64,000 bases of DNA, from sequence record MK250017.1; one strand, given 5' to 3'. The stretch's first letter is position 1, and each line of letters starts with the position of its first letter. The position numbers were made by a program, and so were the translations under genes. Of the stretch, positions 23,448 to 64,000 are shown one piece after another. A model generated the notes under the pieces. It worked only from the letters and a program-made list of their open reading frames with translations. It made no database searches and had not been told where the DNA came from.

Positions 23448-24908
23448 TTATACTAATTTTCCTTTTTGTATATCTTCTTTTATAATATTAAATACTTTTT
23501 CTGCAAATGTATCCAAATCTGATACAACACAACTATAATATGCATCTTCATGATAACCAGAATATGTTCTGTCTGTATATGTAAATTCATATTCATCTGA
23601 AGCAGATAATGAAGTAAGATGGTTTAATGTATCTGTACTGTCTCTATCAGAACTTCCTGACTGCATATATACATGTATAAAACATTTACCATTTGAACTA
23701 TTATAATATAAATCTTTAATAGCACCACTCCAGTCATTATAATTACAATATATTTTCTTATCTGGATTATTTTCCAAAATTGTTTTTATCTATGATTTAA
23801 ACCATTGGAAATAATTAGATGGATTTGTTTCCATCTTATATTTTAATAATGTTTTTTCACTATTAGCTGCATTTTCAGATTCATTACCATTTAATTTATA
23901 TAAAATATATGGTTTAACAATATAAAGATAAACACCTTCACATAATACTTTAAATAAATTAGGTTTTTCATTAAAATATGAATATGATGTTAATGAATAC
24001 TTAAATAAGTTTGTCAATTCAAAATCTCTCTTAAAATCTCGTCTTCTTGCATCAGGTGCAAATGAAGCGGCTTCATATTCAACAAAACAATTATATGAAT
24101 CTGGATCAATTTCAAGATTAAAATATTGATCATAACCGTCATAACCTCTTCTGACATAACCTACATTTTTCCTAATAGCAAATAAATGTTTATCAGAAAA
24201 ACCAGTTAACTTATTAAAATTAATTATATCATCTCTTAATAAATCAACGAATTTAATAGCATCATTATGACATTTCTTTAATAAGCTATTAACATATGAC
24301 TCAATATCACTTTGACATTTTTTATATACTTTATTATATTCGCTTACATATGAAGCTGATTTTACATCAAAATCATCATATAATGAAGTAGGTATATGTT
24401 GTATTAATATTTCAAGTTTTGTAATATATTTTTTACTTACTTTGCTTCTTGTTGATGTTGTACGAGTTTTTCTAACAGGTTTAACAATATCTGGTTCAGA
24501 CTATACTACAGGTATTGACTATATAGGTTTAGTATTAGATGTAATACCCATATTTATATTATATAAGTCTTGTATTTCTGATATAGTTCCACCTAATTCT
24601 AATATTCGATGACCAAATAAATTAAATACCTTAATTTTATCCATATCTCTTTCTGTTTTTGGACATGGTTTCTTCATAATAATAAGAGCTGCAACATATC
24701 TTTCAATTAAATCCTATTTTGTTAATTTTTTCATAGGTTTAACGAATTCACATTCAGTCACTTTATTTCTTGAACAAACTGATGCAACACTTAACCATAA
24801 TTTTCTATCTAATGTTCTGTGATCTATTTTCTTTGCCATCTCATTTAAAATATTTCTGACAGAATATGTATATAGTTTTTTATTTATTGCTTTATCAAAT
24901 AATGACAT
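23448..24908 (-). CDS. TAG-recoded 486-aa hypothetical protein with RYVA-domain
   Basis: Fragments 24714-24908, 23790-24017 and 23448-23777 are one frame joined by 4 TAG. Confidence 0.65.
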
Positions 24909-24949
24909 AATAATATTATTCTTTTTTATAATATATTTATTAAAAATAA

Positions 24950-25708
24950 TTAACTATTAAAGACTGGTCTTATTGTGAATGCATAAAAACGTGGTTCCTA
25001 TATTATATGTGGTACTTCACTTTCATATTTTATATCATTTGAAAAATATAAACTTTGTGCATATGCTTTAATGTTATTTCTATATGTATTCATATATTTA
25101 GGATCTGATGTATTATAAGAAGTCCAGTAATTACCGTATCCATAACCAGAAAAACCTTCAGTAACACTTCCAGCAGCAGGTAAATATATAAATTCTTTAT
25201 TACCTCGTTTTTTAGATGTTATTTTATAACCAGGTATTATATTACCATTAGTATCACACCATTTCCAATTACAATATTTAATTAATTCTTCAAACTATTC
25301 CGGTGTTGGTATTTTATAATTTCCATTTGTTTCCTAATAAGCAGCATCATCTATATCTTCTAATTGGTAATGAACTTTATTCTTAGAATATTTTATAAAT
25401 GTTTTATTATTTCCAGATGGATTAAATTTTGTATAATCTGTTTTAAATATACGCTTAGCATGTACTGGTTCTGTATATCCCCATTGATAGTAATTACCTG
25501 GATCTGTTTCAGTTTCTGCACCTAGATTTTTAGTACACCATAATGTTCCAGAAGGTAAACCTAAATTTACAAATTTATAATTATTTGATATATTATCTAT
25601 TATTGTAGTATTATCATCTAATATAATATCATCGTCTATATCATCAAATAAACTTTCATATATTGCGGTTTTAATAGACTCTATTAATTTATTATATAAT
25701 AATGACAT
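24950..25708 (-). CDS. TAG-recoded protein with Bacteroidetes LGLPSGTLW domain (252 aa)
   Basis: VNLGLPSGTLWCTKNLGA, IPTPE(TAG)FEEL, IYLPAAG, YWTS, IRPV; 3 TAG. Confidence 0.7.
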
Positions 25709-25767
25709 AAAAATATAAAAACTTTTATTATTTATTTTATTATAATATGTGATTAATTATATTGAAT

Positions 25768-26640
25768 ATGAAGAAAATATTTAAGTTAAATAATAATATT
25801 TGTGATCAGATACTTAATGAAGCACAAATACATTTTACTAAAAATTGTTCAAACAGATGTCCTTTCTGTATTGATGCATTTAATAATGGTGTTGGAAATA
25901 AAAAACCAGATATAGATAAGATCTTTTTATCAGTATTAAACATAAAAGATAAAATAGATGATATTGCAATATCAGGTGGTGAACCAATGCTTTATATTGA
26001 TGAACTGTTACAATTAGTCAGAAATATAAAAAGATTTGCAAAATTAAATGTTACTGTTATTACATCAATGCCTATTACATGTTGGACACATAAAGAAACA
26101 TTTTTCGAAATAATAAAGATAATAGATCATCTTATTATTTCACCACAACATTATGATCAGGAAATTGGTGATAAAATCAGAGGTTGTAATTCATTTTATA
26201 ATAGAGAAAAATTATTCAGTGAAATACCATATAAAAATAAAGTTTCATTAACTATTAATATTATAAAAGGTTATTTCAATGATAAACAAGATATTATAGA
26301 TAATATAAAGTTTTTTGAAAAATTAGGTTATTCTAATTTCAAATTAGCAGAAATATTTGAACATGATGAACTTTATGTTTCCATAGAGGATTTATTAGGT
26401 TTTAAATTACCTTCTCCTTTTTCATATGGATGTTCAACAAAACATTTTGATCTATCTCCATATTTAGGATATAATTCAAATTCTGATTTTACTATTAAAC
26501 GATGCTGTTTTTATAAGACTCATAAACAACATGCGTCTATTAATGATTTATTGAAAATATTAATCAGACCATTTTTTGCAAAAAAATATTTTTTCTGTAT
26601 TATATATGAAGATGGAAAAATTGTCAGAAGATGGTTCTAA
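25768..26640 (+). CDS. Radical SAM protein
   Basis: CSNRCPFC (CxxxCxxC), ISGGEP. Confidence 0.85.
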   Translation: MKKIFKLNNNICDQILNEAQIHFTKNCSNRCPFCIDAFNNGVGNKKPDIDKIFLSVLNIKDKIDDIAISGGEPMLYIDELLQLVRNIKRFAKLNVTVITSMPITCWTHKETFFEIIKIIDHLIISPQHYDQEIGDKIRGCNSFYNREKLFSEIPYKNKVSLTINIIKGYFNDKQDIIDNIKFFEKLGYSNFKLAEIFEHDELYVSIEDLLGFKLPSPFSYGCSTKHFDLSPYLGYNSNSDFTIKRCCFYKTHKQHASINDLLKILIRPFFAKKYFFCIIYEDGKIVRRWF

Positions 26641-26661
26641 AAATAAAATTAGTTAATAATT

Positions 26662-27123
26662 ATGGATGTTAGAAAAATATTAGATAATATTACCAAATAT
26701 ATAGGTGATTATATTGCATCACATGCAGATAGAAATGAACTATTGAATAGTTATAATACTATAACAAAAATTGATAGTGCAATTAAAAATATTGATAGTA
26801 CATTGGAAACAATAGATGATAATGAATTATCAGATCGATTAAAAGAATATAAACATAAGAAGGAAGAAGAAAAAGAAAAGATAATGGATGAATTACTGTA
26901 TAAAGTATTACCTAAACCTTCTGTTATTGATATTAATGATTATTCAACAGATGGAAGTAATTATTATACATTAAATAGTAAGGAAAAAAATACACTAAAT
27001 TTTAAAGAAGTAATTAAAGAAAAACCAAAAGAAAAACCAATAACTACCAGAGATTATTATGAAACATATTCAGGTGGATGTGGAAATACATATGGTGGTT
27101 TTTCTCGTTCTGGAGGATGTTAA
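26662..27123 (+). CDS. Hypothetical coiled-coil protein with Gly/Cys C-terminal tail
   Basis: Ends SGGCGNTYGGFSRSGGC; adjacent to radical SAM gene. Confidence 0.55.
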   Translation: MDVRKILDNITKYIGDYIASHADRNELLNSYNTITKIDSAIKNIDSTLETIDDNELSDRLKEYKHKKEEEKEKIMDELLYKVLPKPSVIDINDYSTDGSNYYTLNSKEKNTLNFKEVIKEKPKEKPITTRDYYETYSGGCGNTYGGFSRSGGC

Positions 27124-27278
27124 ATAATAAATTCAATAAATTAATAAACTAATAAATTATGAAATTTTTATTTTTTATATTTTTTATGTACATTATTATA
27201 AAGTTATTTAATAACAATAATAATAATTCAAATTTAAGTTTAAATTAAATGAGTATACTATTTTAAATAAAGCACATT

Positions 27279-56678: not shown

Positions 56679-57002
56679 AATTATAAAATCTTTATTAGTT
56701 AAACAAAAATTAGCATATGAAAATTCATATTATTTATTAATAGAATTTTATATGTCTAATATATCATTATTTTATATAATATAATAATTAAAAAGTCAAT
56801 ATATAAATAAAGAAAATAATATTTCATATATGATAAAGAAATATCCTACAGAATTTTGCTTAAAATATTTAGTACCACATAATATACGAAGAGATAATAT
56901 TAAATATACTGTTCAAGATAGAAAATATCTACACATGTTATTAAATAAAATGAATAATAAAAAAGGTTGAATATTATATGTAATATTCAACCTTCATATA
57001 TA

Positions 57003-58907
57003 TTATAACTTCTCTATAATTTTATCTCTCTCTTCTTTCGTTATTATAATAACAAATTCCTTATTAGAACCAAAATGAGATCTGTTTGTCAATGTTTCTT
57101 TAATATATGGAACATATTTAGTAATCAAATCATCAGTCACAAATAAATATTTCTCACAATCATAATTCTTCAAACAAATATCTATCCAACCATCACAATC
57201 CCTATTAACAGACTCAACACCAGGCCAATTCTCAATATTCCCATATGGTGAACATGTCAATAAACACTGATACTTACCTGTATTCGTACAACAATCAGCA
57301 ATATCTAAATCACATGTAACATTACATAATAAATCAGAATCAATAACAGGTTTCAAGAATTCATATATTTCTTTACTTTCCTTCACACTCGATTCACATA
57401 AATCCCGACCTATATATGATTTACAACATGCCAATGTTCCTATCATTCTACCGCTATATCCAGAAAACGGATCAAATATTGTATCAAACTCATTAAGATA
57501 TTTCTTTATAAGATATTTTGCAAGATCAGGTTTAAAATAAGTAACAGTCTGAAACATCCTTGATGCATTCAATCCTATTCCATAAATAAAATCAGGAACA
57601 TAACATTCATCAATAAAATGTTTCCTTCCTTCTGATTTATACCAATCTGCAAACTTCAATCTGTTAACAAGAAGTTTCCTAAATAATTCCTTATCTGACT
57701 TGATTTTATTCCATCCTTCATATGGTGATATACTGTTATCAATATGTGCATATATAATAGACTTATGAAACTTCTTTATAATTTTAGAAGGTGTTCGCAA
57801 ATCTCTATCCTTTGATTTAATATATTCAAATTCTTTAATACATTCTTCATCAGTAACAGGATGTACAGTAGAAGGTGGAAAATATATATCCTGAATCTTT
57901 TCAAACTCTCTGTCTAAATACTTATCAACAACTTCATTACAATGTGCTGTCGTGCAATTCGCGCTCTTACATAAATTATCTTCTGTCTCTTCTTCACCGT
58001 TTACAATAACCGGTTTATATTTAGGTTTACTTAATAAGTCAGAAATATTAGTATATTTGTTAACCGATTTCTCTTTCTCTTTCTTATTTTCTTCAGATTT
58101 ATCTTCTTTTTTAACCTCTTTATGTTTAGTCTCTTTAACTTTCTTTTGTTCTTTAACTGGAAATACTTCTTGAATACTGGTTTCTACTAAATCCTGTTTT
58201 TCAATGATTTCATTTATATTATCATCAACAGTATATTTAACTAACAAAACAGGTTTATATTTAAAACGCGGTGCTTTACTGGCACAACTTGTAGAACAAT
58301 ATTTCGTATACAATTTTGTATTCTTTCCAATCCAAATAACAGGTTTTCCGCAAACAGGACATTTAGGTTTCTCATAAACACCTTTCCTTATTCGCTGAAC
58401 AGTCTCAAGAATAGAAGATGAATCATCAAATCTATTATTCAAATAATCTAATATAATAGGATTATCTATAAGTTCAACATACTTGTCATATATAATATGA
58501 TTAATAACAACATAATCATTCATATATTCAGAATTATCTATAGACTTCTGCCATTCCTTAAATCTATCATCTCGATGTTCTGCAATTTTAAAACTGTCTT
58601 TATATTGTTCTCTACATAATGAATTATACTTTGACTTACATATAGATGAATCACATGTTTCTTTATAACCGTTTCCTATTCTTCCACTCCATCTTGCTTT
58701 TTTACCACAAAACTTACATGTTACAACAGAATGCAAATCATGAATAACATAATATAACCTCTCTAATATATCTTCATGATGTGTTAAAAAATCCGTGAAA
58801 TCATAAACTTCTTTATTTACATCTTCATTATTTTTAACTATATAAATTAACTGTCTTAAACTTATTTCTTTATTATTATATTGTTTTAAATAATCATTTA
58901 ATTGCAT
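57003..58907 (-). CDS. Zinc-ribbon repeat protein fused to a DNA amino-methyltransferase-like domain
   Basis: CKFCG and KPKCPVCG..YCSTSC repeats; FDPFSGYSGR (motif I), YIGRD, TCSPY (degenerate motif IV). Confidence 0.7.
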   Translation of the reverse strand: MQLNDYLKQYNNKEISLRQLIYIVKNNEDVNKEVYDFTDFLTHHEDILERLYYVIHDLHSVVTCKFCGKKARWSGRIGNGYKETCDSSICKSKYNSLCREQYKDSFKIAEHRDDRFKEWQKSIDNSEYMNDYVVINHIIYDKYVELIDNPIILDYLNNRFDDSSSILETVQRIRKGVYEKPKCPVCGKPVIWIGKNTKLYTKYCSTSCASKAPRFKYKPVLLVKYTVDDNINEIIEKQDLVETSIQEVFPVKEQKKVKETKHKEVKKEDKSEENKKEKEKSVNKYTNISDLLSKPKYKPVIVNGEEETEDNLCKSANCTTAHCNEVVDKYLDREFEKIQDIYFPPSTVHPVTDEECIKEFEYIKSKDRDLRTPSKIIKKFHKSIIYAHIDNSISPYEGWNKIKSDKELFRKLLVNRLKFADWYKSEGRKHFIDECYVPDFIYGIGLNASRMFQTVTYFKPDLAKYLIKKYLNEFDTIFDPFSGYSGRMIGTLACCKSYIGRDLCESSVKESKEIYEFLKPVIDSDLLCNVTCDLDIADCCTNTGKYQCLLTCSPYGNIENWPGVESVNRDCDGWIDICLKNYDCEKYLFVTDDLITKYVPYIKETLTNRSHFGSNKEFVIIITKEERDKIIEKL

Positions 58908-59074
58908 AATAATACTTTATTATTTCTAATAATATTTATATGTTAAAAAAACTCATTTGTTTTATAATGTTAATGGATTTGTTTTCAAAGACTTTCATAT
59001 TAAACATATATATAATAAATAAGATGTAATCTTTATAATTTAGATATATATTATAAATTAAATAATTTAGACAA

Positions 59075-59680
59075 ATGAAATATGTAAGTGCAAAAGAAGC
59101 AAAGAAATATTTTTAGATTTCAGGTTAGACATTGAAGGTATGGAAAGATACTAATAAAATTTTAACTAAACAATTTTCATAGAAAAAAATTTTATATGAT
59201 ATTGATTCAGTAAATAATGATAATAATATTACAAATACCAGGAAGAATGTAATATATGCAAGAGTTTCATGTAGTAATTAGAAATAGTCATTAGATAATT
59301 AGATTGAATTAATTAAATCATATATGATTTCTAATGGTATTAAAGTAGATGATATATATTCAGAAATATCATCAGGTTTAAATGAAGATAGAAAAGAATT
59401 AGCTAGATTAATTCATGATATAGATAATGAATAGATTAATAAAGTGTATATATCATTTAAAGATAGATTAACACGATTTGGATTTAATTATTTTAAAACC
59501 ATGTTTGAAAATCATGGTACAGAAATTATTGTATTAGATGATAATGAAGATACAAATAAAGACTATAAAACAGAATTAGTTGAAGATTTAATTTCTATTA
59601 TACACAATTATTATACTAAATTATATTCTAATAGAAGAAAAGAATTAAAAGAAATAGAAAAAATTTTAAAAAATGAGTAA
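59075..59680 (+). CDS. tnpA: IS607 serine-recombinase transposase (201 aa)
   Basis: MerR-like HTH, IYARVS..N(TAG)K(TAG)SLDN(TAG), SEISSG, FKDRLTRFG; 8 TAG. Confidence 0.9.
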
Positions 59681-59731
59681 TTTTTTAAAATAATTTAGAT
59701 AAATATTATAAAGATTACAAAAGTTACAAAA

Positions 59732-61081
59732 ATGCAAGTATTGAAGATTAAATATCAAACAGATAAAGAATCATTAGATATTATACGGAATTATATGAGA
59801 CAATATAGTTCTGTATAGCATTTTGTATATAATAGGATATAGGAAGGTAAATTATAGAAAGATATAAAACAATAGATTAAGTTATTAAATAATGTAGATT
59901 TATTAGATAGTTGGTTTGTTTAGTGTAGTTTTTATAATATACCTAAAGTTGATAAAGTAATATTTGGTGGAAAGAAGAATTATTTTTAGAGATTAAAAAA
60001 TAATATATCTAAAGAACAGTTTAAATAGAAACGTTTATCCCCTATATATTCAATAGGTGAAGTTATAAACAAATCTGTTAAAGGAAATAGAAAATTTCAT
60101 ATAGAACAAGACTTAGAAAATATTATCTTTAAACCTAATAAATTAACTAAAATAAATTTACAACTTATTGGTTTAAATAAACGAAAGTAGATGTTATCTA
60201 AATTATATTAGAAACAAGAAAGAAAAGAAATAAAAATAGCTTATAAATTAGATTTAGAATATATCTATATAATATTTGAAGAAACTGATATTTATAATTA
60301 TGAAACAAAATTTATAAAAAATAGAGTTCTTGCATTAGATTTAAATCCAAATTATATTGGATGGTCTATAGTTGATTGGAAATCTGAGAGTGAATTTGAT
60401 GTTATTAAATCAGGTGTTTATTCAATTAAAAAATTGAATGACATAGATTTTGGTTTAAAAAATAAAGGATATAGTTCAGAATCTAATGAAAGAAAATATA
60501 TTTCTGTTAAAAGAAATTATGAGACTTTACAAATTGTAAAGAATATAGTGAATAAATCTATATATTACAAATGTCAGATTATATCTATTGAAGATTTAAA
60601 TATTAAATCAAGTGATAAAGAATTAGGTAAACGATTTAATAAGTTAGTAAATAATTCATGGTGTAGAAATGCATTTGTGAATAATTTAACTAAAAGATGT
60701 AATATTCATAATATTAAATTATTGAAAGTGAAACCTGAATATTCTAGTTTTATAGGAAATTTCTTATATAGAAGTTTAAATTTACCGGATATGATATTAG
60801 CTTCAATAGAAATAGGAAGACGCGGATATGAGTTTTATAATCAATATATAAGTAAAGTAAAAGAAATTAAAAAGAATATAGTAAGACCGAATTTAAGTAT
60901 ATTTCAAAAGTTGTATCTTAAGTCGTTGGAAGAATTTAATTTACAGCCGATATACAAGGATTTGATTGAATTATATTACTTCTTCAAAAAGTCGAAACTT
61001 AAATATCGACTTTCTATAGATTCATTCAATCTATAGTTTTCTAGCTTTTATTCGAATACAAGTTTAATTGTATTTATATAA
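59732..61081 (+). CDS. tnpB: TnpB RuvC nuclease (449 aa)
   Basis: RuvC I ALDLNP, II SIEDL, III LPDMILAS; 10 TAG; no CxxC zinc finger. Confidence 0.8.
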
Positions 61082-61097
61082 ATTATAATGTTTATAA

Positions 61098-62123
61098 TTT
61101 ATTATAATAAAAGTATTTAATAAATGTGGACATATAAATGAAATTACAAGACAAGCAATAAACTATTACTATAGGAATAGTAATCATATATATTGTAATA
61201 AGTGTGAATATAAAGAATTAACATATAGGAGTAATTTTGAAAAAGATGTTGTTAAAGAAATAGGAAATATTATAAAAGAAACTAACTATTCTATTATAAC
61301 AAATAAACATATTTATAATGGTAAAGAACATTTTGAAGTTGATATATTAATTCCTGAATTAAATTTAGCAATAGACTGNNNNNNNNNNNNNNNNNNNNNN
61401 NNNNNNNNNNNNNNNNNNNNNNNNNNNNNNNNNNNNNNNNNNNNNNNNNNNNNNNNNNNNNNNNNNNNNNNNNNNNNNNNNNNNNNNNNNNNNNNNNATG
61501 ATATTTATAAGAAAGACATTATATTAAGCCGTTTATCTAGTAAATTAAAATTAAATAAACATATATATGCAAGAAAATGTTTAATTAAAGAATTGACTCC
61601 TAAATTATATAGGGATTTCTGTAATGAAAATCATTTACATGGATCTGTTAATGCTTCAATAAAAGTAGGATTATTTTTTAATGATGAGTTAGTTGAAGTA
61701 ATAGGTTTAGGTAAATCTCGTAAATTAATAGGTAATAATAAAGAAGAAGTTTCATATGAATTATTACGTTTATGTACAAAGAAATATATTAACGTTATAG
61801 GTGGTTTTTCTAAATTAATGAATTATGTTATTAATAAGTTTAATATAAATTTAATATATAGTTATGCAGATTTATCATGGATAGATTTAAAAGGAACATC
61901 ATACATTAATAGTGGATTTTATATAGATAAAGTTATTGATAATGAATATTGGTGGGTTGTAAACAATATACGAGAGAATCGATTGAATTATACAAAGAGT
62001 AAATTGGTATCATTAGGGTATGATAAGCATTTAACAGAAATTGAAATAATGCATTCTTTAAAGTATTATAGAATATTTGGTCCTGGAAATTTAAAATTTA
62101 TATATAAAAAGAAAAGTCTCTAA
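61098..62123 (+). pseudogene. Hef-like homing endonuclease, apparently 5'-truncated (no ATG; partly masked)
   Basis: Open frame KCGH..CNKC..EVDILIPELNLAID in frame with FCNENHLHG, YELLRLC, GGFSKL, SYADL. Confidence 0.6.
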
Positions 62124-62172: not shown

Positions 62173-64000
62173 TCAAAGTCCAGCAACGTCAACACAGAAT
62201 GTAATATACTGAGTTTCAGGATAGAAACCTGCGTCAACAAGAGCATATCTTGATTTTATCATCAACTTAGGGGACATTGTACCCTCTGCGATAATCTGTA
62301 CAGACTCAGCCATTACGTATGGACAGAAATGAACACCTGGCTCATCTTTACCACCCTTACGACCAACAAGTACACGGTTATCAGAACCACCCATGAGAGG
62401 ATCTACATAGATTGTTAAACCGAACATTCCACCGATAGGATAAAGTGAACCACCATTCTGTGAAATTGTGTTAGCAACAGGAGAGAATGTATAGTTAGCA
62501 TTGCTCTGAAGAAGAGTTGCAATTGTAATGTTAGTTACTGCGAATGTAGCTGCACCATAACGACCTCTCTGAAGAATCCAGTTAGAAGCTGCAAGGAAGT
62601 TAACTGCTAATCTCTTAAGAAGAGTATCACGGTTTTCGAAAGCAGCACCAGAAGGAATATACATTGGTTTGTAAGGAAGTGCAACGTTTACATAGCTCTT
62701 ATAAGCAACACCAGTAGGATCATTCTGTTCTGACTGAGGAATTGCAAGAGCAGGAGTCATACGAACACCAGAAGTTGCAGTATAAGATGGGTCAAAACTC
62801 AAGTTCAAGTTAGCTGCAGGACCTTCAACCTCAACGAGCTTGTAGTGGTTCTTCCAACCAAGAGCGAACAAACGAGATGTGATATGACGGTTAATAGTTG
62901 CAGAAAGCTCATTGATACCAGCATTTTCTACCATCTTAATAACATCAATACCCCACTGTTTCTGAAGGTCTGTTACCTGTTCCTGAGTTACAGCGCAACC
63001 AACCATGATTGTACCAACCTATACATGCTTTGTAAACAACTGAAGTGAAAGTTGACGAGCCATTGTCTGCTCACCAGTACCACGACTCATTGGTTCATAA
63101 AGTGTAGTACCATCCTGATATGTACCATACCATGCATCACGATCACGTTCACCAGCACCAGTGAATCCCTGGATCTGATCCTCAAGCATTGAGATAAGAC
63201 GAGGAGCGTGAAGTGTAAGAACTACATTTACTTCTTCAGCAGAACCTACAGGAGTATAAACTGCTTCAAAATCAAGTGCACCACCGTTGAAATATGCACC
63301 GAGTGACTGTGAACCAGAAACAACCTTGAACATAGGATCACCATCAATACGAGACCAACCAACGAACTCAACAACAAGTTTGGCTGCATTATGAGCATCA
63401 TCATCAAGTGCATCCATCTTTGATACAAGAGTTGTACCAGCAGGCATTGCAGAAGCACCCTTTAACATACGCTTAATCTGTGCAGGAGAAAGCTTAACAG
63501 CAGCAGATGAATCAGTTGTAGAACCATCAACAATTGTAGCCTCGCCAGGAGCGATAGAAGCCTTGAATGCATGAGGAAGACCATACATCTCAAAAGGAGC
63601 ATTTGACTGTGAATTTGCCATAGGATTCTGAGTTTTAGCAGAATATGCAGGTGTAGCACCAAATGGCTGCTTTGAACCAGAATATACATAATCCATATAA
63701 GGAAGAACACCAGTAGGACCATCAAGTGGAGTTGTATTTACAAGTTCGAAACCGATAGTCTTAGCAGCAACCTTAAGAGCAAGAGGTAACAAAGTAGGAT
63801 ACTTATCACCAGAACCAAGGTTCTTATTATCTGCGTAGTCAGCACCAGTTAAAGCAGGTTTGCCAGCAGGAACTGGATCACCAACACCAAGTGTGTTATA
63901 AAGGTTATTATATGGTTGATATGTTCCACCGAACTGTGAATATGCATTAGATGGCATTACAAATGCATCCTCATTCAACTTAGCTGTATTATGTGCAAGC
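62173..64000 (-). CDS. Major capsid protein (T4 gp23-like), single internal TAG, 5' end beyond window
   Basis: LPLALKVAAKTIGFELV..PLDGPTG, GRYGAATFAVTN, FCPYVMA, SRYALV; two track ORFs joined by TAG at 63019 (KHV-Q-VGTIMV). Confidence 0.92.

Follow-up and report, generated by a model that had tools for sequence, protein, structure and literature searches.

The Element and Its Gene Products

The 64,000-nucleotide stretch of DNA analyzed here (the window; sequence record MK250017.1) belongs to the Prevotella megaphage Lak-A1 (MK250015, 541,664 bp, from human faeces), to which it is 100% identical. Window positions ~59005–61120 hold an intact IS607-family element, composed of a recombinase gene (tnpA), a tnpB-like nuclease gene on the same strand, and a candidate RNA scaffold at the right end. 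The surrounding region is matched at 98–99% identity by the phages Lak-A2 and Lak-C1 and at ~81–89% identity by the Lak-B phages of baboons. The parts of the element are listed below (aa, amino acids).

59005–59074, + strand: left end (LE), with a boundary uncertain by ~15–40 nt; AATTTAGACAAAT lies just 5′ of tnpA
59075–59680, + strand: tnpA, IS607-family serine recombinase of 201 aa (NF033518, PF00239)
59663–59731, + strand: tnpA-tnpB spacer, the conserved 5′ end of TnpB-only derivatives, with the second AATTTAGATAAAT copy
59732–61081, + strand: tnpB-like gene, 449 aa RuvC nuclease (predicted TnpB/Cas12f fold, D-E-D triad)
60957–61120, + strand: candidate omega (right-end) RNA scaffold, overlapping the tnpB 3′ end (RNAalifold)
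61120–61121, no strand: right end (RE) boundary; similarity among copies at different loci stops after ATTTAA

At the LE, homology with an independently inserted copy in Lak-B9 begins at ~59005, the breakpoint of a deletion in Lak-A2 lies at 59020/59021, and the match to Lak-B3, where other genes occupy this place, stops at 58963. At the RE, Lak-A2 and Lak-C1 part from Lak-A1 exactly at 61120/61121. Copies that carry tnpB only, present in Lak-A1, A2, B3, and C1, align with the window from ~59663–59683 onward; they lack TTCATATTA, which lies on the left side of the two full copies, the one in the window and the one in Lak-B9. The motif AATTTAGAYAAAT occurs at seven sites in the 541 kb of Lak-A1, of which only two are at most 120 nt 5′ of the start of a gene on the same strand, the genes being tnpA and tnpB; with just seven sites genome-wide, it was rejected as a general Lak promoter. 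A sigma-70 scan was uninformative, returning fewer promoter-like sites than in shuffled sequences and no terminator, and no common target or transposon-adjacent motif (TAM) was readable from the few LE flanks compared.

Both frames are open only when TAG is read through, their 650 codons being free of TAA, TGA, and frameshifts. Lak phages have been described as using code 15, in which TAG encodes glutamine (Lak taxonomy paper; Borges et al., bioRxiv 10.1101/2021.08.26.457843). Lak-A1 reads TAG as glutamine: TAG is present at conserved glutamines (Q69 and Q76 of TnpA), and the genome encodes two cognate tRNA(CTA) genes. Genome-wide counts, made on the window plus the remaining 477.6 kb of the Lak-A1 record with masked N stretches kept as N, gave a G+C content of 26% and 32 tRNA genes, among them two whose CTA anticodon reads TAG and one with the anticodon TTA. 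Among 465 open reading frames (ORFs) of at least 100 codons, with TAG taken as sense, 199 (43%) contain at least one in-frame TAG and 266 contain none; the codon totals are 1266 TAG, 2481 CAA, and 1024 CAG. The two tRNA(CTA) genes and the genome-wide occurrence of in-frame TAG justify reading tnpA and tnpB with TAG as glutamine. The tRNA(CTA) genes are positioned ~830 bp apart outside the window (Lak-A1 record ~225329–226308) and flank a 256-aa ORF that has 11 TAG codons, the fourth highest TAG density in the genome. A tRNA-like gene with the anticodon TTA, which would read TAA, is also located outside the window (record ~290204–290276), ~0.5 kb from the right end of a TnpB-only copy at 290755–292218.

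TnpA has an N-terminal helix-turn-helix (HTH) followed by a resolvase catalytic domain. It matches the NCBI IS607 transposase equivalog NF033518 with 168.7 bits (cut-off 110) over residues 7–190, the Pfam Resolvase family PF00239 over residues 59–192 (E = 2.4e-24), and phrog_6620, “transposase” (E = 3e-45). In an alignment of 17 sequences (the window and 16 relatives of 58–90% identity), S65 of the YARVS motif and D130, R131, and R134 of the DRLTR motif are invariant. Q69 and Q76 are also invariant, and each is encoded by TAG in the window; Q69 is likewise TAG in relatives that are just 59% and 67% identical, on other TAG-recoded AT-rich contigs. There is a single tnpA in the whole Lak-A1 genome. 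The same-strand order of tnpA then tnpB recurs in Lak-B9 and in the relatives L031, L081, L082, L093, and L111.

Profile searches with the product of the second gene gave a marginal match to Cas12f chains (E = 0.001) and a sub-threshold match to Cas12b (E = 0.0045). An AlphaFold2 model built from a 47-sequence alignment has a mean predicted local distance difference test score (pLDDT) of 90.1 and a predicted template modeling score (pTM) of 0.80. The top Foldseek matches of the model are Cas12f (E = 2e-8), Cas12k, the TnpB proteins of ISDra2 and ISFba1, and Fanzor2 of mimivirus. Superimposition using VIA-align gave Z = 18.3 with AsCas12f (313 residues aligned), Z = 16.6 with ISDra2 TnpB (286 residues aligned, model residues 1–370), and Z = 12.0 with Fanzor2, and the RuvC core superimposes on Thermus RuvC with Z = 12.2. 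D203, E287, and D353 are invariant in the 47-sequence alignment (33–55% identity) and are kept in 98/98, 97/98, and 98/98 relatives, respectively. Between RuvC-II and RuvC-III the model has just a short helix, and the C-terminal tail of ~75 aa overlaps the RNA scaffold. As modeled, the second gene encodes a divergent, zinc-finger-less TnpB-type RuvC nuclease with a WED-REC-RuvC architecture. The family is large: among 8000 candidates scored in a 90%-clustered set, 3264 proteins match at E ≤ 0.001, and the 50%-clustered set contains 1028 clusters, 304 of them below 1e-30.

The assignment to the IS607 family, which an earlier note had made from the letters of this DNA, is borne out by the NF033518 match of TnpA and the TnpB/Cas12f fold of the second protein, and the catalytic motifs that it described as intact (S65 and DRLTR; D203/E287/D353) are so.

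The last ~120 nt of tnpB and ~40 nt beyond it are conserved at the DNA level above that predicted by the divergence of the protein. The RNAalifold consensus of 11 copies contains four helices with 35 pairs, seven of which show compensatory changes (five in the long-range helix). The elements of this consensus are:

60957–60984, 60988–61013, and 61014–61036, + strand: RNA helices of the RNAalifold consensus
61044–61052 pairing with 61106–61114, + strand: long-range RNA helix, enclosing two hairpins
61115–61120, + strand: conserved terminal ATTTAA, after which copies diverge

Paired cells amount to 95% in the RNA alignment, and sliding the partners lowers this to 31–45%; the corresponding covariation scores are 0.19 and 0.04–0.06. 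The window sequence by itself folds at −32.6 kcal/mol (z = −3.98), and it has no Rfam family match. Codon 435 of tnpB, which 19 of 20 TAG-rich copies spell as TAG, forms part of the third helix (3′ arm). In location and arrangement, the region 60957–61120 is as expected for a TnpB omega (right-end) RNA, and on this comparative evidence we regard it as an RNA candidate only.

Selection and Mobility

Pairwise ratios of nonsynonymous to synonymous substitution rates (dN/dS; Nei-Gojobori method, with TAG counted as glutamine) are 0.09 for TnpA (window versus Lak-B9) and 0.12–0.14 for TnpB (versus four copies of ~85% DNA identity), including 0.10–0.12 for the TAG-rich N-terminal 185 codons of TnpB. 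As judged from these sequence comparisons, both genes are under purifying selection. The ratios bear on the possibility that the locus is a dead relic, i.e. a decaying standard-code IS607 element in which the TAG codons are true nonsense mutations. The fragmentation of both genes into short ORFs under translation table 11, and the failure of Pfam to recognize the second gene, would be consistent with a relic. However, TAG alone interrupts the otherwise clean frames, it is found at invariant glutamines, tRNA(CTA) genes are present, the same pattern is seen in 199/465 ORFs of the genome, and more than 20 diverged copies are open when TAG is read as glutamine. Together with the dN/dS values (0.09–0.14), the clean frames, the invariant TAG-encoded glutamines, and the open diverged copies refute a relic, which we regard as next to impossible; the earlier note, which had named dN/dS and frameshifts as the check on this point, was right to treat the element as functional.

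Comparison of closely related phages implies that the element has moved. Lak-A1 contains one tnpA and three tnpB-family genes in total, and copy number and positions differ between Lak genomes that are 97–99% identical. At the window locus, Lak-C1 has an intact element, and Lak-A2 has a deletion corresponding to window positions 59021–60287, which removes tnpA and the first 185 tnpB codons and leaves the surrounding genes intact. A full copy, 86% identical, is present at a different locus in Lak-B7, Lak-B8, and Lak-B9, and that site is empty in Lak-B3. In addition, two TnpB-only insertions of Lak-C1 have matching empty sites in Lak-A1, including the following:

25740–25747, no strand: empty site of a TnpB-only element, filled in Lak-C1

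The Lak-C1 flanks of this site align with window positions 24332–25746 and 25740–27188 at 98.7–99.2% identity, and enclose an insert of ~1.58 kb that contains a gene for a 462-aa TnpB-like protein with 12 TAG codons. ATTATA is present on both sides of the insert, which in DNA of 26% G+C is indistinguishable from chance. Many metagenomic contigs of 1.4–2.6 kb consist of the element alone, as is the case with repeats in assemblies. The other copies and empty sites that the earlier note had proposed to find in related phages therefore exist. Short solo matches elsewhere in the Lak-A1 record (246562–246621, 475154–475221, and 177455–177637) cover the right-end RNA region, the region upstream of tnpB, and part of tnpB, and are probably remnants of older insertions.

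The earlier note raised a domesticated nuclease as an alternative. In a fuller form of this reading, the TnpB-like genes have become RNA-guided nucleases or regulators that act against competing phages or in genome maintenance, with the IS607 context being vestigial. The TnpB-only copies do keep intact ORFs of 449–462 aa, the D-E-D triad, and low dN/dS; the copy at 290755–292218 of the Lak-A1 record is present in Lak-A1, A2, and C1 with identical TAG positions, and family members are very numerous in big phages. Against domestication, copies vary in number and position among genomes of 97–99% identity, two loci showing a clean presence/absence difference, the window copy in Lak-A2 has lost TnpA and the 185 N-terminal TnpB codons with its neighbors intact, and one Lak-C1 copy yields just a 124-aa ORF. 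The RNA scaffold stops at the element boundary and the flank differs for each copy, as expected of a transposon-borne guide, and tnpA is itself under purifying selection. We consider domestication very unlikely, and at this locus it is contradicted by the internal deletion in Lak-A2 and by the presence/absence differences between near-identical genomes.

We favor as the likely explanation that ~59005–61120 holds an autonomous IS607-family insertion sequence that is still live, or was until very recently, in the TAG-recoded genome of Lak-A1. From what is known of the two protein families, TnpA would excise and insert the element, and TnpB, together with the right-end RNA and using a 3′ extension of this RNA into flanking DNA as guide, would cut element-free copies of the site. 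Recombination between co-replicating phage genomes could then restore and spread the element, and the TnpB-only derivatives would depend on the single tnpA for their movement. Translation of tnpA and tnpB would stop early in standard-code bacteria, and presumably also in the infected cell before tRNA(CTA) acts. The simplest account of the TAG load is drift from CAG to TAG during prolonged residence in a genome that is AT-rich and decodes TAG, and it need not be a device; a lock to the code would then be a consequence of this load, acting as a ratchet. RNA guidance, homing, expression timing, and the impossibility of escape are inferred, and late expression in particular is suggested by analogy with the model of Borges et al. 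for recoded phages.

TAG Codons and Restriction to Recoded Phages

Seven of the eight glutamine codons of TnpA are TAG (codons 14, 18, 36, 69, 71, 76, and 120), the eighth being CAA and none CAG, whereas TnpB has 10 TAG (codons 29, 37, 42, 48, 64, 86, 99, 153, 160, and 435), 10 CAA, and 3 CAG. The occurrence of TAG from codon 14 of TnpA and codon 29 of TnpB means that translation stops early wherever TAG is a stop. The longest ORFs under translation table 11 cover 78 aa of TnpA, lacking the catalytic serine, and 200 aa of TnpB, lacking RuvC-I. Among the 465 Lak-A1 ORFs, the two genes take 10th and 46th place in TAG density.

The positions of the TAG codons are biased toward the 5′ parts of both genes. 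All eight glutamine codons of TnpA, including all seven TAG, are within the first 120 codons; in TnpB, nine of the 10 TAG precede D203, and 16 of the 23 glutamine codons are in the first 160 codons. The clustering arises mostly because the glutamine sites themselves are located 5′ in both proteins: given these sites, the choice of TAG in TnpB does not depend significantly on position (9/16 versus 1/7, Fisher p = 0.09). Among the 82 Lak-A1 genes with at least six TAG codons, TnpB and TnpA rank first and fourth for 5′ skew. A weak 5′ gradient is also present genome-wide: in TAG-containing genes, TAG makes up 53% of glutamine codons up to codon 50 versus 32–37% beyond codon 150. The gradient remains when the first 30 or 60 codons are skipped (p = 1e-5 and 0.004, respectively), with the caveat that ORF starts called too far upstream could produce part of it. 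The gradient could reflect a translational gate or, in part, a start-calling artefact. The TAG share of glutamine codons in TnpB (43%) is close to that in all TAG-containing Lak-A1 genes (38%), so CAG-to-TAG drift under AT pressure suffices as a cause.

These counts modify several statements of the earlier note. Its 10 TAG in TnpB are confirmed, but its eight in TnpA are reduced to seven. Its placement of TAG at conserved glutamines holds for TnpA (Q69 and Q76) and is weaker for TnpB, in which just three of the 10 positions (37, 64, and 86) have glutamine as the most frequent residue among TAG-free relatives. The 5′ clustering stands as a description (7/7 and 9/10) but is not evidence of design in this element; it is mostly a matter of glutamine placement (p = 0.09). 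The proposal that the element cannot be expressed in a code-11 host agrees with the short table-11 ORFs, which contain neither the catalytic serine nor RuvC-I.

The distribution of the 5′ TAG codons may alternatively have been selected as a timing gate, such that no transposase or nuclease is made before suppressor tRNAs appear, and breakage and transposition happen only late in infection, at a time when repair and spread can draw on many copies of the genome. This is possible, although doubtful. The ranks of TnpB and TnpA for 5′ skew, the persistence of the genome-wide gradient when 30 or 60 codons are skipped, and the 7/8 TAG share in TnpA are all consistent with a gate, and Borges et al. 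have argued likewise for the homing endonuclease of an Agate-phage intron and for lysis genes. However, TnpB shows no significantly position-dependent choice of TAG given its glutamine sites (p = 0.09) and has only the average TAG share of TAG-containing genes, more distant members of the family (e.g. L031 and C1_516k) have TAG spread along the gene, the adjoining homing-endonuclease-like genes, which also appear selfish, carry 0 TAG, and the 5′ bias may partly reflect ORF starts called too far upstream.

Relatives were sampled from bacterial and archaeal genome records (26) and from viral contigs (79). Every sampled relative of at least 58% identity has 7–15 in-frame TAG codons, and nearly all of those below 56% identity have 0. 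The TAG-free set includes full IS607 units, with tnpA 58% (L111/L112) or 47–51% (L081/L082) identical. In a maximum-likelihood tree of 98 rows, a main clade unites 22 TAG-rich rows and contains no TAG-free one; it is nested within TAG-free relatives, which come from standard-code contigs. All 25 TAG-rich rows cluster, and one change of state suffices. Taking TAG as sense raises the ORF cover of the flanks from 0.73 to 0.87 at TAG-rich loci, compared with 0.90 to 0.93 at TAG-free loci. The restriction to phages claimed in the earlier note thus agrees with the tree, in which the TAG-rich relatives cluster and all lie in TAG-recoded contigs, and near-identical TAG-free copies, which would have contradicted it, are absent from the main clade of the tree.

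The relatives in the 26 bacterial and archaeal genome records are TAG-free and reach an identity of about 53–56% at most, and those from true isolates (Mesorhizobium and Acetobacter) are just 21–24% identical. None of the 26 carries a Prevotella label, so the code-11 relatives that the earlier note had proposed to look for in Prevotella were not found in this set. As far as the sequences indicate, the transposon branch has diversified within TAG-recoded phages to ~60% protein identity, with no return detected, and the TAG-rich lineage can apparently work only inside TAG-recoded phages. TAG-free members of the family also occur in several copies per contig in other large, AT-rich replicons, as with L063/L064 (JBGVNW010000068, a 360-kb contig binned as Bacilli) and in viral contigs of 127–191 kb (L103–L107, L111, L112, L119, L125, and L147). 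In large phages as a whole, the nuclease-bearing element family seems to be successful.

A stronger interpretation combines these features, proposing an RNA-guided, TAG-dependent IS607 clade that lives behind a genetic firewall and in which early TAG codons were selected to gate synthesis to late infection. It draws on the TAG codons at catalytic-domain glutamines, the TAG in the scaffold helix (19/20 copies), and the genome-wide 5′ gradient. Were it true, the clade would spread only among TAG-recoded phages, and homing between replicating genomes would take place late; we consider this combination unlikely.

Several observations weigh against our preferred reading of the locus as a live or recently live IS607 element whose TAG load is a by-product of residence in a recoded genome. 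With respect to the nuclease, the TnpB-like protein has no Pfam-A match even at E = 10 (noise aside) and no PHROG match, its score against TIGR01766 is 18.9 bits, below the cut-off of 32, so that the NCBIfam threshold is missed, and there is no CxxC pair between E287 and D353 in either the window or the family consensus, i.e. the C4 zinc finger is absent. With respect to the ends, two of the three filled/empty comparisons show 24–40 nt of the empty site replaced at the LE side, and since the junctions are blurred in AT-rich DNA, the element ends are not fixed to the base. Four metatranscriptome libraries (wastewater and animal gut) hold fragments of the family, with contig cover falling at ~58972 and 61121, but these contigs are assembled, possibly from DNA carry-over, and the cover therefore confirms the boundaries of the unit as a repeat rather than transcription or RNA ends. 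The 7/8 TAG share of TnpA and the extreme 5′ skew of both genes leave room for selection. Finally, the relatives were gathered by one conserved peptide pattern, which limits the sampling, support for the main TAG-rich clade is moderate (84 in the Shimodaira-Hasegawa-like approximate likelihood ratio test, SH-aLRT), and the TAG-rich L120, L121, and L140 are located beside this clade in a polytomy, such that a single origin is allowed but unproven.

Known Systems and Genomic Surroundings

The IS607 family, exemplified by IS607 of Helicobacter and IS1535 of Mycobacterium, combines a serine-recombinase TnpA with TnpB. The Lak element resembles these in having tnpA followed by tnpB on one strand, an HTH-resolvase TnpA, and TnpB-only (IS1341-like) derivatives. 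It also appears to be mobile between near-identical genomes, and no terminal inverted repeats or clear target duplication are visible at its blurred junctions. In contrast to them, it is written in code 15 and its near clade is confined to TAG-recoded phages, its zinc-finger-less TnpB is remote from the Pfam and TIGRFAM models, and its carrier is a 541-kb megaphage of lytic type rather than a bacterial chromosome. With TnpB and Cas12f nucleases (ISDra2 TnpB and AsCas12f) it shares a predicted whole-length fold, the split RuvC D-E-D triad, and a candidate structured RNA extending from the 3′ part of the gene to the element boundary; it differs in its marginal sequence similarity, the lack of CxxC pairs, the ~75 aa tail, and an RNA without an Rfam family. 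Loss of the C4 zinc finger has been reported for some large TnpB branches, one of which, RIIIr-4, is represented or enriched in viruses (Altae-Tran et al., 2023; PMC10691335).

Two further comparisons concern viruses. Fanzor2 of mimivirus (PDB 9b0l) is likewise an IS607-associated TnpB relative in a very large virus, but its match (Z = 12.0) is weaker than those to bacterial TnpB/Cas12f, the kinship seen is that of the general family, and the Lak carrier is a bacteriophage. A group I intron of Agate phages encodes a homing endonuclease with an excess of TGA (Borges et al., bioRxiv 10.1101/2021.08.26.457843), which is comparable as a selfish DNA-cutting gene that is rich in a reassigned stop and blocked until the code switch. 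However, the Agate endonuclease is one gene family in one phage group, whereas the Lak element is a two-gene transposon with a candidate guide RNA, and its recoding marks a deep and diversified clade. Neither that study nor the Lak taxonomy paper mentions transposases, and in the searchable literature there is no mention of Lak-phage transposases or TnpB, nor of transposons spelled with a reassigned stop.

IS607 elements, TnpB, zinc-finger-less TnpB branches, and recoded phages are thus already known; new here are a TAG-dependent IS607 clade confined to recoded phages, an unannotated nuclease family with its own candidate RNA scaffold, and comparative evidence that points to recent movement inside megaphage genomes. 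The clade is a natural case of codon reassignment restricting where a mobile element functions, and suggests that recoded phages carry a private mobilome. Synthetic biology builds the same principle on purpose, as a “genetic firewall.” The zinc-finger-less RuvC nucleases of ~450 aa, in 1028 clusters at 50% identity without a Pfam hit, are missed by standard gene callers, and could yield small genome-editing enzymes after their TAG codons are rewritten. The element and the 5′ TAG gradient also provide a way to ask whether reassigned stops time expression during infection. In practical terms, such elements disrupt metagenome assembly of Lak phages and cause local deletions, e.g. the truncation of a neighboring gene.

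The gene that adjoins the RE, outside the element, is the following:

61121–62123, + strand: 3′ two-thirds of a TAG-free homing-endonuclease-like gene (phrog_3339)

It matches phrog_3339, “homing endonuclease,” with E = 1.3e-44, is also Mom-like, and includes a masked stretch (N) at 61379–61497. Lak-A1 is without ~628 bp adjoining the RE that are present in Lak-A2 and Lak-C1, where they form the 5′ part of a 538-aa ORF. Lak-B3 has two tandem homing-endonuclease-like paralogs (551 and 565 aa) at the window locus, and no element.

The other neighbors of the element are also poor in TAG. The major capsid protein gene (phrog_138, phrog_28442), at 62173–63978 on the − strand, has one TAG in 601 codons, and on the other side the gene for a 634-aa protein at 57003–58907 has no TAG. 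It follows that being structural or late does not by itself account for the TAG load of genes in Lak-A1, and the transposon is a TAG-rich island among TAG-poor genes. Upstream of the 634-aa gene, Lak-A2 and Lak-C1 have an extra segment of ~0.9–1.0 kb that is missing in Lak-A1 (window 56846–57000; 845–1830 in L001 and 845–1729 in L002).

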